A stretch of DNA of 64,000 nt, taken from sequence record OR805293.1, one strand, 5' to 3'. The position numbers were made by a program, and so were the translations under genes. Below the pieces are notes generated by a model. It saw nothing but the letters and a program-made list of their open reading frames with translations, was not told where the DNA came from and ran no database searches. Positions 16,352-52,263 of this stretch are shown in pieces. The first letter of the stretch is position 1. The number at the start of each line of letters is the position of its first letter.

Positions 16352-18067
16352 ATGTCTAGTTGGAAAAAACATTTTAAGCCTGCATCAAATTCAGCGCTGC
16401 CTATACAAACTAAAAATACATCTGGTTATGCTTCTGCTGTTTCAAAATATAACACATGGCTTCCTGAAGTTTATATGGGTCCGCCTAATAGATTGGAGCG
16501 GTACATTCAATATGAACAAATGGATCTAGATCACGAAGTAAACACTGCATTAGATACTATAGCAGAGTTTTCCACACAACCAGACGGTGTAACCGGGTTG
16601 CCATTAAATATAAAATTTACAGAAGAACCTACTGAAACAGAATTAAAAATTTTAACAAAAAGCTTAAAAAGATGGATACATCTTAATAAGTTTGAAGATA
16701 GGCTTTTCGGTATTTTTAGATCTACAATAATGTATGGAGATCAATTCTTTATAAGAGATCCGGAAACTTACGAATTATATTGGGTAGACCCGCACAAAGT
16801 AGAAAAAATAATTGTTAACGAAAGTAAAGGAAAAGAAATAGAGACCTATTTCATTAAAGATGTCGATTTAAATACTGCAGAGTTAGTAGGATCTAATGTA
16901 ACTAATAAAATACAAATAGGATACGGAAACACAGCATCTGCTTTCCCCCAAGCAACTATGGGAATAAATCCTGCAGGACCATACGCATCTGCAAATAATC
17001 CTAGTCAGAATGGCTCGTTAGCTAACAGCGAAGCTATGCCGATAAATGCAAAGCATATAGTTCATTTTTCTATGACGGAAGGTATGAATTCTGCGTGGCC
17101 ATTTGGTACTAGTGAATTAGAAACTATATTTAAAGTATATAAGCAAAAAGAAATGCTTGAAGATGCAATGCTTATATATAGAATTCATCGCGCACCAGAA
17201 AGACGTGTGTTCATTATTGACACAGGTAACTTACCTCCTAACAAAGCTCAGCAAGTGTTAGAGCGCGTTAAATATGAAGTACAACAAAAAAGGATTCCTA
17301 ATAAAACTGGCGGCGGAAGTAATATTCTAGACTCGTCATATAACCCTCTTTCTACTCTTGAAGATTATTATTTTGCTCAGTCAGCAGACGGCAGAGGATC
17401 GAAAGTAGATGTTTTACCGGGAGGTTCTAATCTAGGCGAAATAGATGATATGCGTTATTTTAATAATAAAATGATGCGTGCGTTAGGAGTTCCTAGTTCG
17501 TATCTGCCTACAGGACCTGATGATGGTACAGCAGGGTATAATGACGGAAGAGTAGGAACTGCATATATACAAGAATTTAGATTTAGTGAAAGATGCAAAA
17601 GACATCAACGTCAAATAGTAAAAACATTAGATAAAGAATTTAAACTATATCTTAAGTTTAGTGGTATTACTATAGACAATAGTATATTCAATATAACATT
17701 TGTAGAGCCACAAAATTTTGCTAAATATCGACAAATAGATATGGATTCTGCTCAAGTTGCAGTTTTCAATGGGATTGCTGATGTCCCCTACATAAGTAAG
17801 CGGTTTGCATTAAAACGTTATTTAGGTTGGGGAGAAGCTGAAATTCTAGAAAACGAAAAGATGTATGCAGAAGAACAGAGTCTTAAAAACAAACGTGGTA
17901 AAAAAGCTGATGCTGGTATGAGGCAAGTGGGTATTTCGCCAGCAGCGCTAGCTGGTGTCGGGGAGTTTGATACTAGTGCAGTTAGTGATAGTTCTGACTT
18001 CGGTGATGACGATATAGTCGATGATATCGATTTAGATCAAACAGTAGAAGACTTTGGGAAAGAATAA
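16352..18067 (+). CDS. gp20: Portal protein
   Basis: EDAMLIYRIHRAPERRVFIIDTGNLPPNKA; EDYYFAQ...RGSKVDVLPGG; IDDMRYFNNK. Confidence 0.97.
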   Translation: MSSWKKHFKPASNSALPIQTKNTSGYASAVSKYNTWLPEVYMGPPNRLERYIQYEQMDLDHEVNTALDTIAEFSTQPDGVTGLPLNIKFTEEPTETELKILTKSLKRWIHLNKFEDRLFGIFRSTIMYGDQFFIRDPETYELYWVDPHKVEKIIVNESKGKEIETYFIKDVDLNTAELVGSNVTNKIQIGYGNTASAFPQATMGINPAGPYASANNPSQNGSLANSEAMPINAKHIVHFSMTEGMNSAWPFGTSELETIFKVYKQKEMLEDAMLIYRIHRAPERRVFIIDTGNLPPNKAQQVLERVKYEVQQKRIPNKTGGGSNILDSSYNPLSTLEDYYFAQSADGRGSKVDVLPGGSNLGEIDDMRYFNNKMMRALGVPSSYLPTGPDDGTAGYNDGRVGTAYIQEFRFSERCKRHQRQIVKTLDKEFKLYLKFSGITIDNSIFNITFVEPQNFAKYRQIDMDSAQVAVFNGIADVPYISKRFALKRYLGWGEAEILENEKMYAEEQSLKNKRGKKADAGMRQVGISPAALAGVGEFDTSAVSDSSDFGDDDIVDDIDLDQTVEDFGKE

Positions 18068-18288
18068 TGAAAATAAACGATATTATAACAGAAGGTTATT
18101 ATAATCCTGCAGACGATTCTAGTGCAATTGCACATAAGTCAGACACACGTAGACCTAGACTAACATTTTCTCATTTAAATAAGCTTAGAAAAATGAGAGA
18201 ATTGCGTAAAGTAGAAACAGAAGAACATTTAGTGTTAGTTAGACAAATGTATAGCCAACCGATACAATCGGACGATGCATTTGGATAA
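18067..18288 (+). CDS. Small prohead-associated protein
   Basis: Coupled to portal; RRPRLTFSHLNKLRKMRE; position of T4 gp67/68. Confidence 0.65.
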   Translation: MKINDIITEGYYNPADDSSAIAHKSDTRRPRLTFSHLNKLRKMRELRKVETEEHLVLVRQMYSQPIQSDDAFG

Positions 18289-18311
18289 AATTTCTAAAAA
18301 TGTTAGTTTTT

Positions 18312-18333
18312 GGGGCATAAATGCCCCTTTTTT
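18312..18333 (+). terminator. Intrinsic terminator
   Basis: GGGGCAT/ATGCCCC followed by T6. Confidence 0.75.
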
Positions 18334-18354
18334 AATATTAAGTGTAAATACCGA

Positions 18355-18362
18355 TATAAATA
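18355..18362 (+). promoter_or_regulatory. Late promoter TATAAATA
   Basis: Exact T4 late consensus upstream of prohead operon. Confidence 0.75.
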
Positions 18363-18393
18363 ATATACAACGTTTTCCTAAAGGAGTAAAAAC

Positions 18394-19206
18394 ATGTCTC
18401 ATCGTAAGGAACTAGAAAAAGTTCTAGATCTTCTACTAAATGAAAATGCAGAACAAGCTTCGGCTTTATTACATCAAATTGTTGTAGCTAAAGCTCGTGA
18501 TATTTACGAACAAGAATCTGCAGATTTTGAAGAAGATTTTGTAAATGAAGAAGTAGGTGGCGACAGCCGCGAATCGTTTATTGACGACATTAAATCTGAC
18601 GAAGAAGAAATTGATGCAGATGAAATGTTTGATGATCAGTCTAGCGAATTAAATTCTGAAGATGAAGAAGAAGCTGATGCTGATCAAGATATAGAAGATA
18701 AAGTAGAAGATCTAGAAGCTCAATTAGCTGCATTAAAAGCAGAATTTGAAACTCTAGTAAGTCAAGAGGAAGATGAACCGTATCATCCTAATTTAGAACA
18801 AGATTTAGATGATGCTGCTGCTGATGCCTTAGAAAAATTTGAAAGTTTAGAAGAAGCAACTAAGTTTAGTGATTCTGTAAACGTAGATATGAAACAAGAA
18901 GGTAAATTAGCAGGAACAGGTAATAAAAGTAAAACTGGTTCTGTAGATAAAGAATCACCTTTTAGTAAACCTACTCAAAAGAAAAATTACGGAGTAGATC
19001 CTGTCAAATTTGCTAAATCTACTAATCAAGGCGCTGAAGCTTCAAAAAAAGCAGACGAATCGTGTGATTTGAATACAGAAGCTACTCCTGAAAAAGTTAG
19101 CGATCCTGCAATGAAACAAGAAGGTAAATTAGCAGGAACAGGTAATAAAAGTAAAACTGGTTCTGTAGATAAAGAATCACCCCTATCTAAAGCACCTAAG
19201 AAGTAA
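18394..19206 (+). CDS. Acidic prohead core/scaffold-like protein
   Basis: Very acidic; RBS AGGAG; directly upstream of prohead protease. Confidence 0.7.
   Translation: MSHRKELEKVLDLLLNENAEQASALLHQIVVAKARDIYEQESADFEEDFVNEEVGGDSRESFIDDIKSDEEEIDADEMFDDQSSELNSEDEEEADADQDIEDKVEDLEAQLAALKAEFETLVSQEEDEPYHPNLEQDLDDAAADALEKFESLEEATKFSDSVNVDMKQEGKLAGTGNKSKTGSVDKESPFSKPTQKKNYGVDPVKFAKSTNQGAEASKKADESCDLNTEATPEKVSDPAMKQEGKLAGTGNKSKTGSVDKESPLSKAPKK
18889..19181 (+). repeat. Perfect 71-bp direct repeat, two copies (18889-18959, 19111-19181)
   Basis: Both encode MKQEGKLAGTGNKSKTGSVDKES(P) with identical codons. Confidence 0.9.
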
Positions 19207-40833: not shown

Positions 40834-41047
40834 TGTGAAAATTTTAGAAATGGCAGAATCTAGTTGGATAGAATTTGTAGAAAGAAAAGACAATGATGTT
40901 ATATTGCAGACAAAGTCTGGATATACATATCTTATAAAACGAGTTCCAGATGACGTGTGGCTTGAATGGAATATAGCTCCTTCTGCAGGGGCGTATTTTG
41001 TTGCAAATATAAGAAACAAATACCAAATTAATAAAGTTGTAGGATAA
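40808..41047 (+). CDS. KTSC-domain protein
   Basis: YTYLIKRVPDDVW...APSAGAYFVANIRNKY; true start probably downstream of 40808. Confidence 0.7.
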   Translation: MILVCREFSVKILEMAESSWIEFVERKDNDVILQTKSGYTYLIKRVPDDVWLEWNIAPSAGAYFVANIRNKYQINKVVG

Positions 41048-48151: not shown

Positions 48152-50173
48152 ATGAAAAATTATTTGTTAACTGTACCTGTCAATTCTAATGTAGATTATA
48201 CTAAACTAGATATACACGATTTTGTTCCTGCAATAAAAGAATTAACAACTAGATTATTTTATAACACAGGTGTAACACTTCAAAAAGAAACTATTTTGTT
48301 TAATGATTTGGTAGTATCCGAAGATGCTAGTCGATTAGCATTTATTAATAGCATTTTGCATAATCTATTGAATACTTGCTCTACTACTGAGTTAGAAAAT
48401 ATTGCAGATGAGTGTGATACTATTTGCACAGAATACTATAATAATTCTAGAATCGCATATTCTGAAAGAGAATACAATGCATATAAAAATATAAAAAATA
48501 ATGAATCGTATTTTTCAAGTCTAAAATATTATGAACAAAAATATGTAATTGATGCTATAGAATATTACGAAGAAGAATCTGATATTAATTTCTCGCATGA
48601 TACAAAAATATACCTATCATCTTTATATTCGAAACTTAATAAAGCACAGCAGAATTTTTCTAATAATATAATAAAACATACTGCAAAAAACAGGTATTAT
48701 TTTGAACACGATTTCCAAGTTGAAGGTATACCAGATAACATAAAAGATATAATGCGGGAGAATGCAAGGGCAGACGGTCATGAATCCGGATATGTAGCTA
48801 CAACTGAACACTACATCTACACAGCTATAATGCAATATTGTTCGTACGAGTATACTAGAAAAACAATGTTAGAAGCTTTTTATGTAGCTAGTAACGGCGA
48901 ATATAGCAATACAACTAATATAACAGATATTGTATCTATTAAATCTGAAATAGCAAAATTGTTTGGGTTTAGTACGTTTGCAGAAAAATCATTAAAGCAT
49001 AAAATGGCAAAAACACCCAATAATGTATTTTCTGTATTAAATAAATTGAAAGACTTAGTAGTAGATAAAGCATTAGAAGAAGAAAAAGAACTTTTAACTT
49101 TCGCTAAATCTAAAGGATACCAACGACCTTCTGTCCGCGCCGCTGACAGAAATTATTATTCTACTATGAGATTAAAAGAAGAATATAATTTAGACAAAAA
49201 AGTTATAGAAGAGTATTATACATATGCCGGTGTTCTTCCTTGTATATATGGTGTTATAAAAAAACTTTTTGATGTTACATTTGTAGAAGACCCCGATGCA
49301 TCTGTGTGGCATGAAGATGTTAAATGCTATAAGGTATTCGAAGATAGCAAGCATATTGCATATATTTTTATAGATCCGTTTTCTAGGAACGGAAAACAAT
49401 CCGGGGCATGGATGAATGGTATTATTAAAAGGGATTTTGCTTATAATACTACTCTACCGGTTGCAGTAATAGTGACTAATCTGTCAAAAACATCTATTAC
49501 GTTAGATGATGTACGTACACTCTTGCATGAATTTGGTCATGCATTACACCATGTACTTACTAAAGTAGAATTTCCTAATTATAATGGAATTTCTGTAGAA
49601 TGGGATGCAGTAGAATTGCCGAGCCAATTATTGGAAAATTGGATTAATGATAAAGAGCTTTTAATTGAAATGTCGTCTCATTATTCTACAAAAGAAAAAA
49701 TTCCAGAATATATAATTGATAACTGGTTGGCTATAGATAATTATATGGCTGCGTCTTCGTTAAGAACACAGTTATTATATTCATTAGTAGATATGAAAAT
49801 TTTTAATAGCAATGCAAAGACAGATAAAGATTGTATAGAAATTTTTAATGAAGTAGCAAAAGATTTAAAATTAAACACAGAAGATAATCCGTTTATGCAT
49901 TTGTTTTTATATTCGTTTTCTCATATATTTTCCGGAGGATATACAGCAGGTTATTATAGCTATTTGTGGGCAGAAATTATGTCAAGTGATGTTTATTTAG
50001 AATTTAAAAATAAAGGAATGTATAATATAGAATTTGCTAATAAAATTAAAAAAGATATTCTATATGCAGGTTCTATTAATGACTTTGATGTAATGTATAG
50101 AACATTAATGGGTAGAGATCCTGACCCAGAATCTCTGCTAATAGTTAGGGGATTGCAGAATAGCAAAAAATAA
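48152..50173 (+). CDS. prlC: Oligopeptidase A-like M3 metallopeptidase
   Basis: KQSGAWM, LLHEFGHALHH zinc motif, WDAVELPSQLLENW, FSHIFSGGYTAGYYSYLWAE. Confidence 0.9.
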   Translation: MKNYLLTVPVNSNVDYTKLDIHDFVPAIKELTTRLFYNTGVTLQKETILFNDLVVSEDASRLAFINSILHNLLNTCSTTELENIADECDTICTEYYNNSRIAYSEREYNAYKNIKNNESYFSSLKYYEQKYVIDAIEYYEEESDINFSHDTKIYLSSLYSKLNKAQQNFSNNIIKHTAKNRYYFEHDFQVEGIPDNIKDIMRENARADGHESGYVATTEHYIYTAIMQYCSYEYTRKTMLEAFYVASNGEYSNTTNITDIVSIKSEIAKLFGFSTFAEKSLKHKMAKTPNNVFSVLNKLKDLVVDKALEEEKELLTFAKSKGYQRPSVRAADRNYYSTMRLKEEYNLDKKVIEEYYTYAGVLPCIYGVIKKLFDVTFVEDPDASVWHEDVKCYKVFEDSKHIAYIFIDPFSRNGKQSGAWMNGIIKRDFAYNTTLPVAVIVTNLSKTSITLDDVRTLLHEFGHALHHVLTKVEFPNYNGISVEWDAVELPSQLLENWINDKELLIEMSSHYSTKEKIPEYIIDNWLAIDNYMAASSLRTQLLYSLVDMKIFNSNAKTDKDCIEIFNEVAKDLKLNTEDNPFMHLFLYSFSHIFSGGYTAGYYSYLWAEIMSSDVYLEFKNKGMYNIEFANKIKKDILYAGSINDFDVMYRTLMGRDPDPESLLIVRGLQNSKK

Positions 50174-50617: not shown

Positions 50618-50704
50618 CCCTTAGGACCGCCAAATGTTTTGGCTTAAGGCGCACCGGTGCTGTATCGGAGCTTAGTGATTCGCTACCACAAAAGCATAAG
50701 CAGC

Positions 50705-50731
50705 TAGGAGACTTAAAACGTCTCCTATTTT
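50705..50731 (+). terminator. Intrinsic terminator
   Basis: TAGGAGAC/GTCTCCTA followed by T-run. Confidence 0.8.
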
Positions 50732-50755
50732 TATATATATACAGGAGTAAAGTAT

Positions 50756-50947
50756 ATGAATAGCGATTATGCCTCTATGTTTATAGTAATATTTGCTATA
50801 TTAGTTGTGTTTATTTGTAGACCGACAACATTTAATGAGCCTAAAAACACTATCGATACAAACAAAAGCAATGTAGCGAACGACAGTATTCCACTTACAG
50901 GAAACATTTCTAGAACACCGGGTATAGGTACAGGTATAGGATTATGA
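50756..50947 (+). CDS. Small membrane-anchored protein
   Basis: AGGAG RBS; N-terminal TM helix. Confidence 0.7.
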   Translation: MNSDYASMFIVIFAILVVFICRPTTFNEPKNTIDTNKSNVANDSIPLTGNISRTPGIGTGIGL

Positions 50948-51096
50948 AAAAGAAAAACCCAATCGAACGCAATCCAGTTGCACATCATGTAAACACATTT
51001 AACAAACCTAAAGTAGAAAAAGACAAGACAAAATACTCTAGGAAACAAAAACACAGGACTAGGAATAGTCCTGATTTTTTATGTATAATATATTGA
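50944..51096 (+). CDS. ArfA-like alternative ribosome-rescue factor (50 codons), not in ORF track
   Basis: MKKKNPIERNPVAHHVNTFNKPKVEKDKTKYSRKQKHRTRNSPDFLCIIY*; KVEKDK and YSRKQKH resemble ArfA RVEKNK and YMRKGKH; ATGA overlap with upstream stop. Confidence 0.6.
   Translation: MKKKNPIERNPVAHHVNTFNKPKVEKDKTKYSRKQKHRTRNSPDFLCIIY
51054..51080 (+). terminator. Intrinsic terminator inside the ArfA-like CDS
   Basis: CAGGACTA-GGAA-TAGTCCTG then ATTTTTT, ending 13 nt before the stop codon. Confidence 0.8.
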
Positions 51097-51122
51097 CAGA
51101 TATTGTATTTGGAATATACAAT
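51093..51122 (+). promoter_or_regulatory. sigma70-type promoter
   Basis: TTGACA-18 nt-TACAAT. Confidence 0.65.
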
Positions 51123-51144: not shown

Positions 51145-52263
51145 GTGGCAAAAACGAAACATATTTTTAAAGTTCCAGATTATTCTCTTTTAAAATTAGA
51201 TTCTAAGACATATACTAAGGATTATAGGAATGCAATTTGGTATTTGCATTACGAAGCATCTGCTGCTACTCTTAAATCTGCAACACTAAAATGGATTAAA
51301 AATAATACATCTTATGATGTAAAAGATTTATCTTCGTTGAGTGATTCTGATTTTTCTATTATCGGAAAATATTGTACTATACTAAATGCCGGCGGACAAC
51401 TTCCTAGTCATGCTAATTTCGTCGAATCACACATAGACAAGATATTTCAATCTATCAAAAAAGAAGAAATTACAGAAATTGTCGAAGAACCAGAACCTAA
51501 AATAGAGCATGATAGTTGCAAAGTTAAAAAAATAAGTATACAGGATAGAATTAAGAGCCAGGCATATAAAGCTTGCGGAGAAATTGAAGGATTAATAGAT
51601 CAATTTTATAGTAATCCTAGTGAGTTTGTAGTATCCCAACAAGAAATAGAATCCTTATTTAAAAAATCAGAAATAAAATCCCATCATGTAAAATATATTA
51701 CCGAAATATATAGCACTAATAAAAAAGAATTAGAGGAGCTTTCGGCAGGAAAATCCGAACAGTTAAACGAAGGTTATAATTTTTTAACTAAACGGGATAT
51801 AAACAAAGCCATAAAGCTATTTAATTTAATTATAGAAACTGCGTCTAGTAGTAAAATAGTTACTGTTAAAAAACGAGCTAAAAAACAAAAGCCATTGGAT
51901 ATTTCTAAATTAGTTAAATCGTTTAAATATTTAGAAAAAAGCACAGATCTTAACTTAGAAAGTATTAATCCTGTCCATATTGTTGGTGCAAAAGAAGTAT
52001 GGGTGTTTAATACAAAAAGTAGAAAGTTAGGAAAATATATTGCTTTAGACACTACAGGTCTATCAATAAAAGGAACTACTATAACTAATTTTTCCGAAAA
52101 AAGCATAGAAAAAACTATTCGTAAACCGGAAGAATATTTTAAAAATATTAAGAAAATTTCTAAAAAGGCAAAAGAAAAATTATTTGTAGATACTAAATCT
52201 GTCGAAACTAAACTAAAAGGAAGAACAAACGAGCATTGTATCATTCTTGAGGTTATAAAATAA
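51145..52263 (+). CDS. Hypothetical protein of a type seen in T4-like phages
   Basis: GTG 51145 after AAGGAG; C-terminal IVGAKEVWVFNTKSRKLG...KTIRKPE domain. Confidence 0.75.
   Translation: MAKTKHIFKVPDYSLLKLDSKTYTKDYRNAIWYLHYEASAATLKSATLKWIKNNTSYDVKDLSSLSDSDFSIIGKYCTILNAGGQLPSHANFVESHIDKIFQSIKKEEITEIVEEPEPKIEHDSCKVKKISIQDRIKSQAYKACGEIEGLIDQFYSNPSEFVVSQQEIESLFKKSEIKSHHVKYITEIYSTNKKELEELSAGKSEQLNEGYNFLTKRDINKAIKLFNLIIETASSSKIVTVKKRAKKQKPLDISKLVKSFKYLEKSTDLNLESINPVHIVGAKEVWVFNTKSRKLGKYIALDTTGLSIKGTTITNFSEKSIEKTIRKPEEYFKNIKKISKKAKEKLFVDTKSVETKLKGRTNEHCIILEVIK

Follow-up and report, generated by a model that had tools for sequence, protein, structure and literature searches.

A terminator ahead of the stop codon in a DUF7230 gene of a jumbo Pseudomonas phage points to a probable ArfA/BrfA-like ribosome rescue factor with its own non-stop mRNA

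The last 64 kb of the genome of Pseudomonas phage Deifobo (OR805293.1, 224358 to 288357; this 64,000-nucleotide stretch, identical in sequence to the record, is called the window here) contain a short open reading frame (ORF) at positions 50944 to 51096, whose small, basic product belongs to the Pfam family DUF7230. Because of the design of this gene and the basic tail of its product, we propose that the protein probably works like ArfA or BrfA, that is, as a ribosome rescue factor with its own non-stop mRNA. Within the ORF, a terminator-like hairpin precedes the stop codon, and a structure in this position is conserved in the family. Judged from sequence, the novelty is that an uncharacterized Pfam family carries the non-stop signature of arfA and brfA across a bacterial order and in phages, a gene design absent from every annotation of DUF7230 that we found. 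Deifobo, which infects Pseudomonas aeruginosa PAO1, belongs to the genus Wroclawvirus and is a jumbo phage similar to PA5oct and Paride.

The ORF (plus strand, like all features of the DUF7230 region given below) comprises 50 codons and a TGA, and its product reads MKKKNPIERNPVAHHVNTFNKPKVEKDKTKYSRKQKHRTRNSPDFLCIIY. An earlier note on this DNA, made from the letters alone, had described the ORF as unannotated; GenBank does list it, each time as "hypothetical protein" (Deiofobo_0500, Paride_0503, and PA5oct EST35_0191). The same note had reported that the ORF is coupled to its upstream neighbor through an ATGA, and its ATG does overlap the TGA of the 63-codon ORF at 50756 to 50947. The protein matched PF23876 (DUF7230) over residues 8 to 41 (59.7 bits; E = 3e-16; gathering cutoff of 27 bits), placing it in the family, and other DUF7230 homologues scanned against the same profile scored 51 to 70 bits. 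It also matched PHROG 6310 (E = 7e-12) and three related PHROGs (2701, 1359, and 4586), none with an assigned function. A scan of the protein against NCBIfam gave no match. The conserved core (residues 8 to 41, ERNPVAHHVNTFNKPKVEKDKTKYSRKQKHRTRN; positions 50965 to 51066) includes a basic tail, K-Y-x-R-K-x-K-H, that weakly resembles the tail of ArfA.

Among 1.84 billion representative proteins, searched exhaustively with HMMER, 25 relatives were found at E ≤ 0.001; they share the consensus ..NPVAKH...FNKP.V..DKTKY.RK.KHK. A word-indexed protein search with the phage protein returned itself alone. In an unbiased alignment (A1), V12 was invariant and N10, D27, K30, Y31, R33, and K36 nearly so; in a pattern-selected alignment (A4), N10, V12, D27, K30, Y31, R33, K34, K36, and H37 are invariant by construction. 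The six Wroclawvirus genomes differ by just two substitutions inside the ORF, both synonymous. It is extremely improbable that the ORF is untranslated and that the conserved element acts as RNA only, given that all substitutions in the ORF among these close relatives are silent and that the protein-family match remains strong between genes that differ widely in nucleotide sequence and G+C content.

The element inside the ORF (51054 to 51080) resembles an intrinsic terminator. Its hairpin, at 51054 to 51073 (CAGGACTA-GGAA-TAGTCCTG), has an 8-bp stem with four G-C pairs and a GNRA loop; it is preceded by the A-rich tract of the KQKH codons and followed by an A and then T6 at 51075 to 51080. Folding returned the hairpin as the centroid structure at about −12 kcal/mol, and the terminator scan and the folding agree with the earlier note, which had placed a GNRA hairpin with a U6 tract inside the coding sequence (CDS), after the conserved KH and before the stop. 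The stem opens with position 3 of the His37 codon, and the end of the U tract falls in codon 46. According to the ORF list and the promoter scan, the first in-frame stop, the TGA at 51094 to 51096, lies 13 nucleotides (nt) past the U tract and within the −35 hexamer TTGACA (51093 to 51098); this stop looks incidental, because it is part of the −35 box of the next promoter. From the terminator position and by analogy to brfA, the coding part of a terminated, non-stop transcript would run from 50944 to 51081, about 45 to 46 codons ending in ...RTRNSPDF(L).

Two comparisons bear on the placement of this element. On the same strand of the 64-kb window, five terminator-like sites follow a stop; a convincing terminator (8 bp, T6) no more than 60 nt upstream of its own stop was found in this ORF alone, the only other candidate being a weak 6-bp hairpin (40976 to 40992). 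Across six related phages the element was unchanged, save that T6 becomes T7 in Pseudomonas phage sp. 30-3 (L175). There the extra T shifts the frame of the tail, so that the annotated stop lies 75 nt further on and the ORF, now of 75 codons, overlaps the next gene; the sequence before the U tract is unchanged. This is consistent with the codons after the U tract being dispensable, and a homopolymer sequencing error is also possible.

To extend the comparison to the family, a degenerate DNA pattern, N.V-(14 aa)-D[KR].KY.RK.KH (aa, amino acids), was scanned in two collections, giving 60 viral contigs and 102 bacterial loci. The pattern fixes N..V and D[KR].KY.RK.KH, so part of the invariance at these residues comes from the pattern itself; the statistics on hairpins and stops are independent of it. 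Most of the 102 bacterial loci (one genome per species) carry titles of Methylococcales or methanotrophic symbionts, along with many generic metagenome-assembled genomes and two Lysobacterales; the named taxa are Methylobacter, Methylomonas, Methyloprofundus, Methyloglobulus, Methylomarinum, and mussel methanotroph symbionts. In Methylobacter and Methyloprofundus (L135, L108, and L095), the DUF7230 gene adjoins mnmG-rsmG-parA, divergent from it, and evidently belongs to the core chromosome and not to a prophage.

In almost all bacterial loci, a hairpin of 46 to 58 nt (dG of −20 to −47 kcal/mol) begins 2 to 8 nt after the KH codon, with the in-frame stop past the hairpin or, in six cases, within its loop. 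RNAalifold analysis of 93 distinct bacterial sequences gave a 23-bp helix with compensatory double changes in all 23 of its 23 pairs; 92.1% of cells were paired, compared to 66.4% in shuffled alignments and 38 to 50% when the partners were slid (covariation score of 0.705 versus 0.23). The reading frame is likewise constrained. Among 97 loci, the distance from KH to the in-frame stop was 54 nt or more in 90%, compared to 21% and 43% for the other two frames, and a stop within 30 nt of KH was present in 3% in frame versus 34 to 37% in the other frames. The tails after KH vary in sequence and length between loci, and the stem covaries. Therefore, given the covariation and the frame that is kept open, both the RNA structure and the absence of a stop ahead of the hairpin are selected. 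A survey of rescue factors that covered more than 15,000 genomes scored three strains, PAO1, Methylococcus capsulatus Bath, and Methylobacter tundripaludum SV96, as ssrA+, smpB+, arfB+, and arfA negative (PMC11633108, Table S1). The last of these carries a DUF7230 gene with a hairpin before the stop (L152), which fits the idea that DUF7230 fills the niche of ArfA.

Members of the family also occur in phages. With tblastn, matches were found in 556 phage records (permissive E limit of 10, at which the weakest are probably spurious), including PAK_P1-like Pseudomonas phages, many Vibrio phages, and phages of Acinetobacter, Salmonella, Yersinia, and Erwinia. Many DUF7230 relatives have long, nonconserved, and often hydrophobic tails after KH, as in ArfA, and seven of seven long-tailed members fetched through protein look-ups have a strong hairpin directly after KH and before the stop, with a T-run in most. 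Hairpins before the stop are present in L006 (P0008) and L007 (P0014), both with a GAAA loop; in L179 (P0012), on a phage-like contig; in L180 (P0026), on a 101-kb phage-like contig; in L181 (P0003); and in two bacterial members, L008 (P0015; bacterial chromosome) and L182 (P0017). A hairpin followed by a T-run ahead of the stop was seen in six phage-like or metagenomic members (L006, L007, L050, L179, L180, and L181).

The proposal of a rescue factor encoded on a non-stop mRNA has to be weighed against two sets of observations that count against it, one on the design of the phage genes and one on the protein itself. As to the genes, most viral members lie within operons, with an ordinary stop 1 to 10 codons past KH and no hairpin. 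PAK_P1-like phages, which share the host P. aeruginosa, have a normal stop and no hairpin, and PAK_P1 gp50 overlaps the next gene. Two long-tailed viral lineages (L036; L045/L047/L054) lack the hairpin, and among the IMG/VR loci the terminator-before-stop design occurs in L050 only. The homologue in Erwinia phage Hallingskeid, with a 10-bp hairpin right after KH and a TAA abutting the stem, is ambiguous. Moreover, the hairpin of the Deifobo gene is short (8 bp, four G-C pairs) and is a putative terminator. The earlier note had asked whether homologues keep the terminator ahead of the stop: nearly all bacterial genes and several phage or metagenomic ones do, and most phage homologues stop normally and have no hairpin, so that one of the outcomes that the note itself had counted against its reading holds in part. 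Non-stop control is thus the rule in bacteria and the exception in phages, with Wroclawvirus among the exceptions. Since most phage members stop normally, non-stop expression would not be obligatory for the role of the protein in phages.

These observations fit a simpler account, in which the gene encodes a small basic protein of no unusual kind, the overlap of the operon terminator with its final 14 codons is a chance result of genome compaction, and read-through suffices for the 50 residues, with no regulatory meaning in this phage. Ordinary stops in most phage homologues are what this account expects; the hairpin has only 8 bp, and by a rough, uncomputed estimate a run of 14 codons without a stop is not unlikely in A+T-rich DNA. 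Nevertheless, we consider it unlikely. The placement recurs independently in diverged members and is strongly selected in bacteria, and the other clear terminators of the window come after their stops. In addition, the stop is the −35 box of the next promoter, and the frame of the tail is shifted in phage sp. 30-3, which is viable.

As to the protein, the likeness to ArfA is marginal. The earlier note had aligned the product by eye with Escherichia coli ArfA; it quoted the ArfA sequence correctly and the basic tails are weakly similar, while the resemblance is confined to the tail and does not extend to a match with the ArfA family PF03889. At E ≤ 10, neither the phage protein nor six other DUF7230 members matched PF03889 (gathering cutoff of 25.5 bits): ArfA proteins match PF03889 only and DUF7230 proteins match PF23876 only. 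The one other Pfam match of E. coli ArfA is DUF7230, over the tail and far below threshold (E = 0.11). Searching Protein Data Bank (PDB) sequences with the DUF7230 profile found no ArfA chain, though ArfA chains are present there. Pairwise BLASTP of the phage protein against E. coli ArfA aligned 22 residues, 9 of them identical. When the families were compared by hhalign with three ArfA alignments, P values were 4e-3, 6e-4, and 1e-4, covering K..Y.RK.KH and the residues after it only, and the probabilities were 9 to 55%, again for the lysine-rich tail (KTKYSRKQKH) only. In 200 column-shuffled ArfA profiles, which control for lysine richness, 0 to 1 reached the observed local or global score. 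In ArfA itself, it is the basic C-terminal tail (KGKGS-Y-x-R-K) that fills the mRNA channel when this is empty.

The N-terminal half is the part that would have to engage a release factor if the protein worked as ArfA does. ArfA residues 15 to 31 bind release factor 2 (RF2), and F25 sits in a hydrophobic pocket of RF2 (PMC6299226). By hhalign, the N-terminal half of DUF7230 has no significant similarity to this RF2-binding half. A mostly conserved residue, F19, stands opposite ArfA F25 in forced global alignments only, which carry no confidence, and no local similarity was found. Judged by the Pfam profile, the protein lies outside PF03889, and "ArfA-like" is used here for an analogy of gene design together with a weak similarity of the tail.

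A related possibility is that DUF7230 is a true, highly diverged orthologue of ArfA, that the split between PF03889 and PF23876 is artificial, and that the protein acts exactly as ArfA does, through RF2 only. Motifs are collinear in the forced global alignment (N-x-V, F, V, and K..Y-x-R-K-x-K-H), which again carries no confidence. The hairpin is in the identical position, Vibrio ArfA reading ...FQRKAKHRGKEP- and Methylomonas DUF7230 ...YQRKAKHSGLEP- before it begins, and the checked genomes that carry DUF7230 were scored as arfA negative. On the other hand, cross-detection between the families by hidden Markov models was never significant, DUF7230 has no KGKGS loop, and convergence on tails rich in lysine and arginine (K/R) is documented for ArfT (PMC6299226) and BrfA (PMC6881298). 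We therefore regard orthology as a doubtful explanation, though one with some claim to attention.

Structure and annotation gave no further support. An AlphaFold2 model built from 54 sequences consists of two short helices (predicted local distance difference test score, 73.5; predicted template modeling score, 0.26), and Foldseek found nothing in the PDB for it; the model is uninformative for a peptide that would fold only on the ribosome. Searches of PDB sequences with phmmer and with the DUF7230 profile gave no matches. Databases give the family no functional name ("DUF7230 family protein" or "hypothetical"), and a literature search found no mention of it.

Several branches of the family depart from the simple architecture. 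In one viral clade (L021, L024, L044, L048, L057, and L058), a zinc-ribbon-like CxxC...CxxxC segment is fused N-terminally to the DUF7230 core. In an IMG/VR clade (L009, L017, L020, L022, L023, L043, and relatives), the core is preceded in frame by a membrane segment, and a GTG or ATG stands immediately ahead of the core; this may represent either a fusion or an internal start. Vibrio T5-like phages (L172, L173, and L174) are divergent, keeping the N-terminal half RN[FP]VA[KR]H..FN[KR]A.V..D[RK]TKY.R with an acidic tail instead of RK.KH; on the same branch, JSF10 has a 17-bp hairpin 7 codons ahead of the stop.

The protein could also be a phage modulator that sits in the empty mRNA channel and blocks transfer-messenger RNA (tmRNA)-SmpB or ArfB or redirects host translation, the bacterial homologues having a different ribosome-associated role. 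Consistent with this are the lack of significant similarity between the N-terminal half (NPVAKH..FNKP) and the RF2-binding part of ArfA, the viral members that are fused to a zinc ribbon or lie in frame after a membrane segment (unseen in the ArfAs examined), and the retention of the N-terminal half only in the Vibrio T5-like phages. However, if the protein were an inhibitor, it would be difficult to account for a chromosomal, syntenic gene in Methylococcales that is under hairpin control of the arfA type, and both published hairpin-before-stop cases that we retrieved, arfA and brfA, are backup rescue factors. We consider a modulator quite unlikely and prefer the rescue factor.

A rescue factor of this kind, which the earlier note had also proposed and which is the best supported of the readings considered, might be made and act as follows. 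PA5oct depends on host RNA polymerase and has sigma-70-like promoters (TTGAC / TATAATA) and 36 predicted factor-independent terminators; during its infection the phage share of transcriptome reads rises from 21% to 93% (PMC7318152). In Deifobo, the host polymerase would transcribe the membrane protein gene and the DUF7230 gene as one unit and mostly stop at the hairpin and U6, at about 51079 to 51081. The transcript would end inside codon 45 to 46, 13 nt short of the TGA, yielding a non-stop mRNA. Ribosomes would reach its 3' end and stall with a peptide of about 45 residues, which would be tagged and degraded as long as tmRNA-SmpB has spare capacity. If trans-translation were saturated or disabled, the peptide could instead be released, with host ArfB or previously synthesized factor as possible agents, and would accumulate; saturation might be triggered by mass mRNA decay in the phage take-over or by RNA- or tRNA-cleaving defenses. 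The K/R-rich tail KTKYSRKQKH of the free peptide would then enter the mRNA channel, left empty, of further stalled ribosomes, and the N-terminal part would recruit a release factor, leading to peptidyl-tRNA hydrolysis and returning ribosomes to the synthesis of phage proteins. Transcripts that read through the terminator would yield the 50-residue form, which ends in the short hydrophobic stretch LCIIY and would be comparable to full-length ArfA.

The surroundings of the gene are as follows. The upstream gene, Deiofobo_0499 (63 codons, 50756 to 50947), encodes a predicted small single-pass membrane protein with the hydrophobic segment MFIVIFAILVVFIC in its translation and had no family match in Pfam, NCBIfam, and PHROG scans. 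Downstream, a sigma-70-like promoter of the type described for PA5oct (PMC7318152), TTGACA-18-TACAAT with 11 of 12 matches (51093 to 51122), precedes a gene with a GTG start (51145 to 52263; 372 aa; PHROG 11903, without assigned function) and marks the start of a new transcription unit. For the two-gene unit of membrane protein and DUF7230, no promoter was identified in the window. The T4-type late promoter (TATAAATA) was considered and rejected: it occurs in the window less often than expected by chance and nowhere upstream of the two-gene operon.

Elsewhere in the window, a structured, G+C-rich 138-nt spacer (50618 to 50740) lies 5' of the two-gene unit, with a terminator at its end (50705 to 50727 followed by T5). 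It had no Rfam match and a fold z-score of only −1.64, and may represent a leader or a small RNA. Just upstream of the DUF7230 region, at 48152 to 50173, lies a gene for a full-length M3 peptidase similar to oligopeptidase A (Peptidase_M3, E = 4e-105). A strong terminator at 18312 to 18327 (GGGGCATAAATGCCCC followed by T6) lies 3' of the CDS at 18067 to 18288 and inside a small overlapping annotated CDS (18275 to 18415), which may be a miscalled ORF or a second case of a terminator within an ORF. An Rfam scan of the window gave nothing at gathering thresholds and chance-level matches only at E ≤ 10, and ARAGORN found no tRNA or tmRNA in it.

Only a handful of alternative rescue factors is known (ArfA, ArfB, ArfT, and BrfA), and surveys score many Gammaproteobacteria as ArfA negative. 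Whether DUF7230 as a whole is an unrecognized, widespread rescue-factor family, be it a deeply branching lineage of ArfA or one that arose independently, we hold to be an evenly balanced question. Such a family would act as a tmRNA-gated chromosomal backup in Methylococcales and some other arfA-negative Gammaproteobacteria and would have been captured by many phages, mostly in constitutive form; Wroclawvirus would have kept the tmRNA-sensing switch and would supply an ArfA-type pathway absent from P. aeruginosa. If DUF7230 is a rescue factor, maps of ribosome rescue need revision, with a tmRNA-gated backup in Methylococcales and others. Phages would then commonly bring their own rescue factor, which bears on the cycling of ribosomes during host mRNA destruction or under RNA- or tRNA-cleaving defenses. 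Paride, of the Wroclawvirus group, is known for its ability to kill dormant cells of P. aeruginosa (PMC10761892), and a phage-borne device that frees stalled ribosomes is a candidate contributor to this killing. The hairpin-before-stop signature could also serve as a search key for further unrecognized rescue factors.

The comparison with known systems rests on the arfA and brfA sequences of PMC11633108 Table S2 and on arfA of E. coli K-12, searched with the same hairpin finder. At the level of sequence, the window, the family, and these reference genes all show the design of the ArfA/BrfA class, in which a hairpin or terminator lies within the ORF and precedes the stop. The arfA hairpin begins immediately after the RKAKH motif in Vibrio vulnificus and three codons past KH in E. 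coli, where it spans codons 49 to 69; in Neisseria and Shewanella it lies over the end of the basic tail or a few codons before, and the brfA terminator lies just past ...KRKHKNPYD. The earlier note had stated that arfA and brfA are expressed from non-stop mRNAs, which is published: the arfA mRNA has no stop and is repressed by trans-translation (PMC10107115), and brfA has a plain intrinsic terminator within its coding region (PMC6881298). Mature ArfA has 52 to 55 residues (PMC6299226); given the position of the E. coli hairpin, the mRNA should therefore end in the 5' arm of the hairpin. An end in the 5' arm would also accommodate the six bacterial DUF7230 genes with a stop in the loop. The arfA hairpin is a substrate of RNase III.

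ArfA (PF03889; E. coli yhdL) and DUF7230 are both small, and the conserved part of each ends in a basic ...Y-x-R-K-x-K-H tail. Both have a hairpin within the ORF directly after this tail and a stop beyond it, past a nonconserved and often hydrophobic tail, and in arfA and the bacterial DUF7230 genes the hairpins are both long (23 bp in DUF7230). In contrast, ArfA has a KGKGS loop that is missing in DUF7230, and its RF2-binding segment, DNA[IL]KAL..LFR, differs from the N-terminal half NPVAKH..FNKP of DUF7230. ArfA also differs from the phage gene in its long hairpin as opposed to a short intrinsic terminator, and the latter gene is phage encoded. ArfT of Francisella tularensis is likewise a very small rescue factor (40 aa) whose C-terminal tail is basic; genetics alone revealed it, homology searches having failed, and unlike ArfA it is not under termination or RNase III control (PMC6299226). 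ArfT was rejected as a DUF7230 member by a comparison of the tail motif only, its published tail KKGGSTNKK being without KY.RK.KH (PMC6299226). BrfA (Bacillus subtilis YqkK), which matched no Pfam family, PF23876 included, at E ≤ 10, differs in being chromosomal and in belonging to a Gram-positive lineage; it is nevertheless the closest match to the proposed mechanism of expression of the phage gene. As far as the sequences allow a comparison, the long bacterial DUF7230 hairpins resemble that of arfA, and the short phage terminator resembles that of brfA.

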